A program made the position numbers and the translations under genes. Positions 10,124 to 26,724 of a DNA stretch of 64,000 bases are shown one piece after another. Under the pieces are notes generated by a model. The model was not told the origin of the DNA and searched no databases. It worked only from the letters and a program-made list of their open reading frames with translations. Each line of letters begins with the position of its first letter. Position 1 is the stretch's first letter. Source of the DNA: Mytilus californianus (Eukaryota); NCBI RefSeq assembly GCF_021869535.1, contig NW_026262723.1:41168001-41232000 (forward strand), written 5' to 3'.

Positions 10124-13100
10124 ATGGCGGAGCAAATGACGCTTAGAGGGACCCTCCAAGGGCATGGAGGATGGGTGACACAGATCGCCACTACTCCCCA
10201 ATATCCTGATATGGTGTTGTCGTCCTCTCGGGGTAAAATCTCTTGCATCTGTTTGTTCTATTTATGACCTGAAGGTTTTGCACATACTCTCATTTGTAAT
10301 AAATCTTCAAGCCGTTGCACCCACTCTTATTTTTAATTTGAAACGTTTTCGATGTTTGTTGCATACTGTTAGTATGTTTACATGTACATTTTTTGTCTTT
10401 TTTGAATGCCGGTAGAACTTTTGACAGCTCCAAATGGTGAGGACCAGCAGATTTTCTTCAAGGACCACTAGGGAAAAAAAGATTTAAAAAACTCTGGCAT
10501 CTACTAGATATATATATATATATATAAGTAAATTTTAGTTGTGAAAAATTAAGTTTGAAATACTATCTACTTAATGGGCTGAATCATTGGACCAATTTGT
10601 GGTAACCTGTGAATCTCTTAACTGTAAAGTGAGGGGCCTCGGACAAAGTGTAGTCAGTTGATAACGAATTTAAGTTTGTTTATCTACAATTTGTATTTTC
10701 AGACAAGACCTTGATTATGTGGAAGTTGACCAGAGATGAAACAAATTATGGTTTACCACTCAGATGTTTAAGAGGTCATGGTCACTTTGTATCAGATGTA
10801 GTCATGTCATCTGATGGCCAGTTTGCCTTGTCTGGATCATGGGATAAGACTCTACGTCTGTGGGATCTTGGAGCGTAAGTCATTTCTAATAGTCTGCTTA
10901 AATAGTAATCTTGAATGTTCTTTAAAAGTTTCATAAAATTGACTTGACAGCTTACAACTGATGGCAATATTAAGGTGACTCCTAGTGTTAACTAATGTTG
11001 TACTCTTAAAGTAATGGATAACCAATACAAAATAAATATGTCTTTGACGAAACACAATCAGCGATAATCATTTTTCTGTACAATTAGCTGATTCCTTGTA
11101 AGGCCAATAAAAAATATATGTCTGTTTAAGGTTACATACTTTTAAAAAATAGGGAAGGGAGGTCGGTATTTCCATTTTATTTTATTTTTTCGTTTTAGTT
11201 TTTGTGACATGATTTTGAGTCATGCTGTTTCGTCTTGTCGTGGTCCGAGTTGATCTTGGGCAGAGTTTCCCCGTATTTTTAATGATTGGATTATTTCCCT
11301 TGGTAATTGGTTGGCAAAGTGTTTATTTCATCACACGAGTTGCGAATTTCCTAAAAACAACTGTCATTCACGATTGTGAACATTGGGATGTATCAGGCAA
11401 TTGATTTATATTGTTTGCAACACTAACTTCGCTTTTGACACGAGTTCAGTTTATTTTTCACTTTACGACGGAAATAAAATGACAGGGTCAGCACTCAAAA
11501 GTAGGGTCGGTCAGGTAACCGTAAACAGACATATATATTTTTTTTTGGCCTAAATTTCATTTTGTCATTACAATTCTACATGTACAATGTTACATACAAA
11601 CTATCAGAGCACATCCAAAATGCCTTTGAAAAGGAGGGGGGCTAAAAATGAAAGGACTGAATAATCCTCAATGAGACAACTATGCCAAAGACGGAAGAAG
11701 TTTCACCATGAGAAATTATATCATGAACAAACACTCAATACCTGTCAAATTGTAGTATGGAATATACACCTGAAATACATAAAATTAATTTACTGCATCT
11801 ATTGAAAACTTTCTTCATGCAAAGAGTAAACACATTGTTAATATATATCTGAATTTGATATCATTCCGTAAGATATAAATGTGATAAGATATTAATTTGA
11901 CTTTTCATACTTTTTCAGAGGAACAACAACCCGTTTGTTTGACAACCATGACAAAGATGTCCTCAGTGTAGCCTTCTCTGCTGACAACAGACAAATTGTT
12001 TCAGGTTCCAGAGATAAATCTATCAAACTGTGGAACACCCTTGGTGTCTGTAAATACACCATTCAGGTACTTTTTCAAATATTACAATGAAAGATGATCT
12101 GATTTAATAGTATTCTTATGAAGCCTCTGATATAATAGATAGATGATAATTTTGAATTTTGAGAGGATATTTAAAACATGAGAGAACCGCAGAAGTGAGG
12201 GAATATCAAAATTTGAAACAAAATTATCTCTCCAGTCCACGTGTTCTGTTTTTACCAATGATTATGAAAATATACATGTATTAGCTATTGATCAACATGA
12301 AACTACTAAATGTATGAGGTTAAACAAACAACTCTGCAGGAATGTTTTCTTGACTCTTGGCAAATTTCCTAAACATTAGGTCATTGTGCTGCCAACACTT
12401 GCCTTTAACTTGACTTGATGTAAATAACTATTAGTTTCAAATGGATTTTAACAGATGATCTATCTTACTTGATGCCAATAACCTGAAGTATCCATTGAAT
12501 ATTATTATATGGTCTAAAAAGGGTTTTTTGAAATTTGGAAACCATATTCAGTCTTGAGAGTAATTCCCTAGGTTACAAACCCACAAATTTAACATTTACT
12601 TATTAGTCTTTGTGCTGTGAATAAGTACCTTAAAAAAAAGCAAAAAATCAAGTCAACTTTGCATTAGGGACCTAGAACCCTTGTTTCCTTACAATTTCTA
12701 AATTTATCAATAGAAAATTTAAAATATGTTTATATAAAATCATGTTCATGTAGAACCACAACACTTCTGGTCTAATGGTAACCTCAGGTACTAAAGTCAG
12801 CCAGCAGTGGTATCGACCCAGTGCTAGTAAATAATGTAATAAAAGTTTATAATTCAAATTACATTAGTTTATTTTGTTAATACCTAAGATAGCAGAAATT
12901 TGAAATTATCTTTTGAATTGTCTTGTCTACAGGATGAAGGCCATAGTGATTGGGTATCCTGTGTTAGATTTTCACCAAATACAGCCAATCCAATTATTGT
13001 ATCCTGTGGATGGGACAAACATGTTAAGGTAAGGATGTCATTTATTTTGATTTTCGTTTGTTTAAAATAAATTCAAACATTGAAAACACATTTTTATACG

Positions 13101-26724: not shown

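Follow-up and report, generated by a model that had tools for sequence, protein, structure and literature searches.

[quoted passage not shown]

Introduction

Boxes C and D of a C/D snoRNA come together in a kink-turn, whose arrangement into stem I and stem II is described in PMC8413462 and PMC6770171; in stem II, position 6 of box C forms a Watson-Crick pair with position 1 of box D (PMC6461891). Within a 64,000-nt stretch of the Mytilus californianus genome (hereafter the window, with a G+C content of about 32%), five snoRNA candidates belonging to two families had been predicted to share a non-canonical combination of boxes, AUGAUUA for box C and AUGA for box D, in which this pair would be U-A instead of the usual G-C. 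How did two families come to carry the same double change? The original prediction offered two answers: an AT-biased box dialect, possibly spread over the whole genome and missed by standard scanners, or the descent of both families from one ancestral snoRNA by guide replacement.

Results

Five elements with C/D architecture lie in the introns of RACK1

The five elements, A1 and A2 (family A) and B1 to B3 (family B), are all located in introns of a RACK1 gene, in sense orientation (Table 1). RNA reads defined GT..AG junctions joining position 12063 to 12930 and 13026 to 13885, and loose read ends joined 10874 to 11919 and 13998 to 23604; the remaining exon boundaries were set from the translation and splice signals, and the matches to RACK1 protein were found exon by exon (exons 2 and 7). 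In vertebrates, an intron usually holds a single snoRNA, placed some 70 nt before its 3′ splice site. The RACK1 elements differ on both counts, since three of them (A2, B1 and B2) sit together in the 9.6-kb intron 5 (13999–23603), and all five lie 0.6–8 kb from the 3′ splice site.

Table 1. Exons of the RACK1 host gene and snoRNA elements in its introns (window positions)
Feature	Position	Strand	Details
RACK1 host gene	10124–26724	+	CDS of 7 exons, 954 nt (317 codons and stop)
RACK1 exon 1	10124–10232	+	translation and splice signals
RACK1 exon 2	10703–10874	+	matches PDB RACK1 residues 38–92, E 1e-42
RACK1 exon 3	11919–12063	+	3′ boundary from RNA-read junction
RACK1 exon 4	12930–13026	+	both boundaries from RNA-read junctions
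RACK1 exon 5	13885–13998	+	5′ boundary from RNA-read junction
RACK1 exon 6	23604–23743	+	5′ boundary from loose read ends
RACK1 exon 7	26548–26724	+	matches PDB RACK1 residues 260–316, E 1e-33
snoRNA A1	12250–12324	+	intron 3; C 12258–12264, D′ 12288–12291, C′ 12297–12303, D 12314–12317
snoRNA A2	14210–14283	+	intron 5; C 14218–14224, D′ 14246–14249, C′ 14255–14261, D 14273–14276
snoRNA B1	15023–15094	+	intron 5; C 15031–15037, D′ 15055–15058, C′ 15065–15071, D 15084–15087
snoRNA B2	15616–15687	+	intron 5; C 15624–15630, D′ 15648–15651, C′ 15658–15664, D 15677–15680
snoRNA B3	25567–25637	+	intron 6 (last); C 25575–25581, D′ 25599–25602, C′ 25608–25614, D 25627–25630

Each element is 71–75 nt long, lies on the plus strand and carries the full architecture of a C/D snoRNA, in the order 5′ stem arm, box C, spacer, D′, a loop of 5–6 nt, C′, spacer, box D and 3′ stem arm. 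All boxes were found at the positions where they had been predicted. Box C is AUGAUUA, D′ is UUGA and box D is AUGA in all five, and C′ is AUGAAAC in family A and AUGAAAA in family B, in agreement with the claim that D′ UUGA and C′ AUGAAA(A/C) are common to both families. Compared with the consensus RUGAUGA/CUGA, box C is retained at six of seven positions and box D at three of four in every element, and the GA dinucleotides that make the sheared pairs are intact in both boxes. The guides and the internal spacing differ between the two families. A model built from the five sequences (R1) scored A1 at 69 bits, A2 at 69.7, B1 at 85, B2 at 87.9 and B3 at 83.6; it found no further match within the 64-kb window, and a permissive scanner of our own likewise picked up no additional C/D RNA. 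On its own, the heptamer ATGATTA is not enriched in the window (30 matches, 26.3 expected).

The RACK1 introns also hold other kinds of sequence. High-copy dispersed repeats occupy positions 13100–13720 and 14614–14881, where word depth in a related organism's DNA run summed to as much as about 4e5, many of these reads coming from other copies. A strong positive GC skew (0.16–0.26) and repeated hairpins mark positions 16000–22000, a region whose hairpins look like inverted-repeat elements of the long RACK1 intron, and plant and animal miRNA models match weakly on the minus strand at 17525–17603 and 20515–20606.

The predicted kink-turn retains a Watson-Crick pair as U-A

In all five elements, boxes C and D can be read in the kink-turn register G.A, A.G, U.U, U-A, A-U. 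The pair that PMC6461891 describes between position 6 of box C and position 1 of box D is kept here as U-A instead of G-C, as had been predicted. This U6:A1 pair is invariant among the five elements, so that it covaries only by comparison with the consensus and with other snoRNAs of the genome. The fold expected of the two boxes begins with stem I and a bulge of 3 nt; two sheared G.A pairs and the U.U pair would come next, then U-A in place of the usual G-C, and finally A-U. Because U-A keeps the pairing, binding of Snu13 and assembly of Nop58, Nop56 and fibrillarin would be expected to take place on this kink-turn. In eukaryotes, Nop58 and Nop56 also recognize stem II.

Archaeal RNAs give experimental grounds to expect that a kink-turn with U-A is functional. 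According to the account given in PMC6461891, Kuhn et al. (2002) found that single changes at the same two positions weakened L7 binding and that the double change restored it. Those mutants were analyzed in an in vitro archaeal system with L7Ae.

The terminal stem covaries

Double-sided changes affect five of the seven pairs of the terminal stem, and about 91–92% of the cells are paired across the five sequences. This value was reached by none of 500 shuffles, and only 30–64% of cells were paired when the partners were slid. For example, one stem pair is A-U in A1 and G-C in A2, and stem pair 5 is C-G in B3 as opposed to U-A in B1 and B2. The terminal stem of B1 comprises 7 bp; beyond it, extra outer pairing was noticed in both B1 and B2.

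B2 is a local duplicate of B1. The two RNAs are identical in their boxes, in the conserved UUCACA and in the D guide, whereas they differ in a compensated stem pair, in the D′-proximal spacer and in the D′–C′ loop. For A1, A2 and B1, covering contigs from a second organism were available, and all of the differences listed fall outside the RNAs, a pattern that is only compatible with conservation of these three elements.

Guides point to 18S U164 and 5.8S G74

The guides were searched against the rRNA genes of this same genome. The guide of family A, which is the same in A1 and A2, forms 12 Watson-Crick base pairs with positions 161–172 of 18S rRNA through nucleotides 2–13 upstream of D′, and the fifth nucleotide from D′ falls on U164. 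This residue corresponds to human U169, which is not known to be methylated in human. With this geometry, the two copies of family A would guide methylation of 18S U164.

In family B, nucleotides 3–10 upstream of box D form 8 bp with positions 72–79 of 5.8S rRNA, and the fifth nucleotide from D falls on G74, which, counted on the human sequence, is equivalent to human Gm75. This duplex beside box D is short. The three copies would guide 2′-O-methylation of 5.8S G74. Beside box C, family B has a conserved UUCACA that pairs with the neighbouring UGUGAA in 5.8S rRNA, providing an accessory contact of 6–8 bp. The regions that contain UUCACA are located at window positions 15038–15054, 15631–15647 and 25582–25598; the contact abuts the 8-bp guide duplex on its 5′ side, and the combined bipartite contact amounts to 14–16 bp. 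This arrangement is similar to the “extra base-pairing” that van Nues et al. described in 2011 (PMC3116282).

When the family B guide pattern was searched genome-wide, no copy with snoRNA features was found outside RACK1, and the 120 matches obtained when metagenomes were scanned for orthologues of family B were all unrelated. The family A guide pattern had one extra exact match genome-wide (L187), which was rejected because it is accompanied by neither credible boxes nor a credible stem, and its other genome-wide matches, likewise set aside, mostly belonged to one dispersed repeat. The 18S stretch targeted by family A is also matched in antisense by a 17-mer, CATGTATTAGCTTGTGA, that lies in a dispersed repeat found at about 65 places in the genome.

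Family B is the counterpart of vertebrate SNORD96

Human SNORD96A (U96a) has consensus boxes and a length of about 72 nt. It sits in an intron of GNB2L1/RACK1 and is a predicted guide for Gm75 of 5.8S rRNA (PMC7812721). Family B resembles it in its sense location within a RACK1 intron, in a D guide that places the same 5.8S G at the fifth nucleotide and in its similar size; it differs in having U6 in box C and A1 in box D, and in being present in three copies as opposed to one. Because both the host gene and the 5.8S site are the same, family B is the positional and, by prediction, functional counterpart of vertebrate SNORD96. The Rfam SNORD96 model (RF00055) gave no match with E of 10 or below, even when a stretch of just 721 nt was searched, and we therefore call family B a counterpart and not a member by sequence model.

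The other Rfam models did no better with the five elements. At gathering thresholds it reported nothing across the window, and generic C/D models aligned end to end to the elements at just 17–25 bits, including a weak full-length match of SNORD72 to A1 (24.7 bits) and more than 10 models on exactly the span of B1 (17–24 bits). The prediction that standard tools would miss these RNAs thus holds for Rfam, but this result does not separate the unusual boxes from general divergence as the cause. In an RNA run from a cDNA library with 151-nt reads, depth was high over the exons and zero over the snoRNAs and most of the intron; since RNAs of 72 nt would escape a library of this kind, the zero depth is uninformative. 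The RACK1 snoRNAs are predicted to be expressed, bound by protein and active in methylation.

Other snoRNAs of the genome have canonical boxes

A small census of the 1.65-Gb assembly provided 27 copies to be read from the SNORD18, SNORD27, SNORD57, U14 and U3 families. The first three families were reached by chosen guide patterns taken from the genome's own rRNA, with the first base of box D left free. In all 27 copies, box C has G6 and box D has C1. The nine copies of SNORD18, which lie on one contig and in some cases about 290 bp apart, all have box C AUGAUGA and box D CUGA. SNORD27 was represented by seven copies according to Rfam and by five according to the guide pattern, all with box D CUGA and G6, and G6 is retained even in the one copy whose box C reads GGAUGA. 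The two copies of SNORD57 have canonical boxes, the six U14 copies found with the Rfam model all have UGAUGA and CUGA, and the C′/D motif of the three U3 copies that were read, out of 44 matches to the Rfam model, is UGAUGA/CUGA. These RNAs are similar to those of RACK1 in architecture, in their terminal stems and in forming multi-copy local clusters; they differ in that most of the copies reach 30–168 bits in their own Rfam families, whereas the RACK1 RNAs score at most 25 bits in any.

Several features of these loci deserve description in their own right. SNORD18 and SNORD27 (seven copies) form dense local clusters. On contig C99 (88,556,219–88,603,066), U3 forms an array of at least 39 tandem genes with a period of about 1.13 kb, and more are found near 62.12 Mb. 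All six U14 genes (contig C88) have GGAAGU before box D, the perfect complement of 18S rRNA being GGAUGU, and their methylation guide is thus mismatched three nucleotides from box D. A first guide pattern for U14 gave a single match, which has no snoRNA features and was discarded, the true U14 copies differing from the pattern by one guide base; a guide pattern for U24 gave five matches genome-wide, none of which is a snoRNA.

We also scanned the assembly for a composite motif made of CCA, box C and U, followed after 40–62 nt by U, box D and GG. It occurred nine times in 1.65 Gb, compared with once for the reversed control, and is thus strongly non-random. Five of these nine matches are the RACK1 RNAs, which lie within 13.4 kb, on one strand and in one gene. 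With K and M wildcards at the two variable positions (box C position 6 and box D position 1), the matches were nine U/A, one G/A, no G/C and no U/C, and the control gave two. The same two flanks, CCA ahead of box C and GG behind box D, occur in the SNORD57 orthologue, whose boxes are canonical. The four matches outside RACK1 are near-identical 80-nt copies located on contig C165, at about 43.49–44.07 Mb, in one dispersed repeat of 600–800 nt. Considered as a third family (L011–L014), they were rejected, as they have no terminal stem and no convincing rRNA guide and belong to a single dispersed repeat; they are probably an amplified chance match.

Outside RACK1, the motif scan found the U/A form just in one stemless dispersed repeat, and the genome-wide AT-biased dialect that the original prediction envisaged is contradicted by the canonical boxes of 27 out of 27 copies from five other families. 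Judged by the five families read and by the genome-wide motif scan, snoRNAs with U-A occur at the RACK1 locus and nowhere else.

The U-A pair most likely arose once, at the RACK1 locus

Families A and B have D′ UUGA and C′ AUGAAA in common, and these internal boxes differ in the other families read. Since U-A is restricted to a single gene and comes with shared, non-consensus D′ and C′ boxes, a single double change is the simplest account, and we infer that the two families most likely had one origin, followed by a change of guide. One compensated double change would have arisen in an ancestral snoRNA hosted by RACK1; the resulting U-A snoRNA would then have duplicated within RACK1, and family A would have gained a new guide. 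The proposed descent of both families from one ancestor by guide replacement fits the restriction to one gene and the shared D′ and C′. The CCA and GG flanks, which also occur in canonical SNORD57, are no evidence of shared ancestry. Considering the evidence as a whole, we think it probable that the five elements are intronic box C/D guide snoRNAs hosted by RACK1 and that their U-A state is derived at this locus, with a single origin as the most likely course of events. Weighing against this view are the low Rfam scores, the short family B duplex beside box D, a family A target outside the known methylated sites of human, the atypical placement within the introns and the small number of families in the census; the flanks of canonical SNORD57 weaken the case for one origin.

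Alternatively, families A and B could have gained U6:A1 independently, either by parallel compensated changes under AT pressure or by gene conversion, which is plausible between nearby intronic copies. The differences in guides and internal spacing between the two families would fit such a history, and the flanks shared with SNORD57 may reflect a common kink-turn preference. However, as U6:A1 occurs in none of the five other families, two gains in one gene are unlikely, and A and B also agree in their non-consensus D′ UUGA and C′ AUGAAA; we therefore regard independent gain as unlikely.

We give little credence to the possibility that the elements do not work as snoRNAs, being either pseudo-copies in decay or a local repeat with a chance likeness to C/D RNAs. 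Such an origin would account for the non-consensus boxes, the weak homology scores and the presence of several copies in one long, repeat-rich intron, but it does not sit well with compensatory changes in the stem, with boxes and guides that are strictly conserved while the spacers drift, or with a guide that shares both its 5.8S site and its host gene with human SNORD96A. Moreover, the genome has just five copies, all in sense orientation in RACK1, and the second-organism differences listed all lie outside A1, A2 and B1. Least credible of all, and very improbable, is an AT-driven dialect in which many or most C/D snoRNAs of the species would have AUGAUUA/AUGA: the genome is AT-rich (about 32% G+C in the window), the change runs toward AT, the one precedent described is from a very AT-rich nucleomorph genome and Rfam misses all five RNAs, yet G6 and C1 are found in every one of the 27 other copies, each real match to SNORD18, SNORD27 or SNORD57 turned out to have CUGA with the first D-box base left free, and the U/A motif outside RACK1 is limited to one repeat with neither stem nor guide.

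Discussion

The preferred reading, a compensated double change that most likely occurred once in a RACK1-hosted snoRNA, adds to a phenomenon that is already known. In the nucleomorph of Guillardia theta, the three snoRNAs GtNM-R12-14 combine box C AUGAUU with box D AUGA, a combination that was read as compensatory (PMC6461891). The two cases are alike in the identical swap, in the Watson-Crick pair kept beside U.U and in the AT-richness of the genome. By contrast, the RNAs themselves are unrelated, and those of Guillardia belong to the reduced genome of an algal endosymbiont, whereas the RACK1 RNAs lie in an animal nuclear gene, include a recognisable counterpart of SNORD96 and occur in a genome whose other snoRNAs read canonical. 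Because the swap had already been reported in Guillardia, the RACK1 case is a further instance; what is new is the set of five C/D members, with family B matching SNORD96, and not a new kind of system.

A more far-reaching proposal is that the RACK1 locus records the birth of a new guide, in which a SNORD96-type U-A copy would have swapped its guide and come to specify a lineage-specific Um at U164 of 18S rRNA, with a weaker stem II and a distinct assembly. We consider this proposal speculative and rather improbable; if it were true, a weaker stem II made of A and U only would make these snoRNPs assemble with an efficiency of their own, which might be lower or regulated.

These five genes go unnoticed by annotation pipelines that look for RUGAUGA/CUGA or rely on Rfam thresholds, and the effect of the swap is local, the other snoRNAs examined in the genome being canonical. 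The presence of a SNORD96 counterpart in the same host gene as in human means that the relationship between RACK1 and SNORD96 is old. Finally, the five RACK1 RNAs provide a natural animal example of a C/D kink-turn in which the Watson-Crick pair of stem II has been maintained through a double change.
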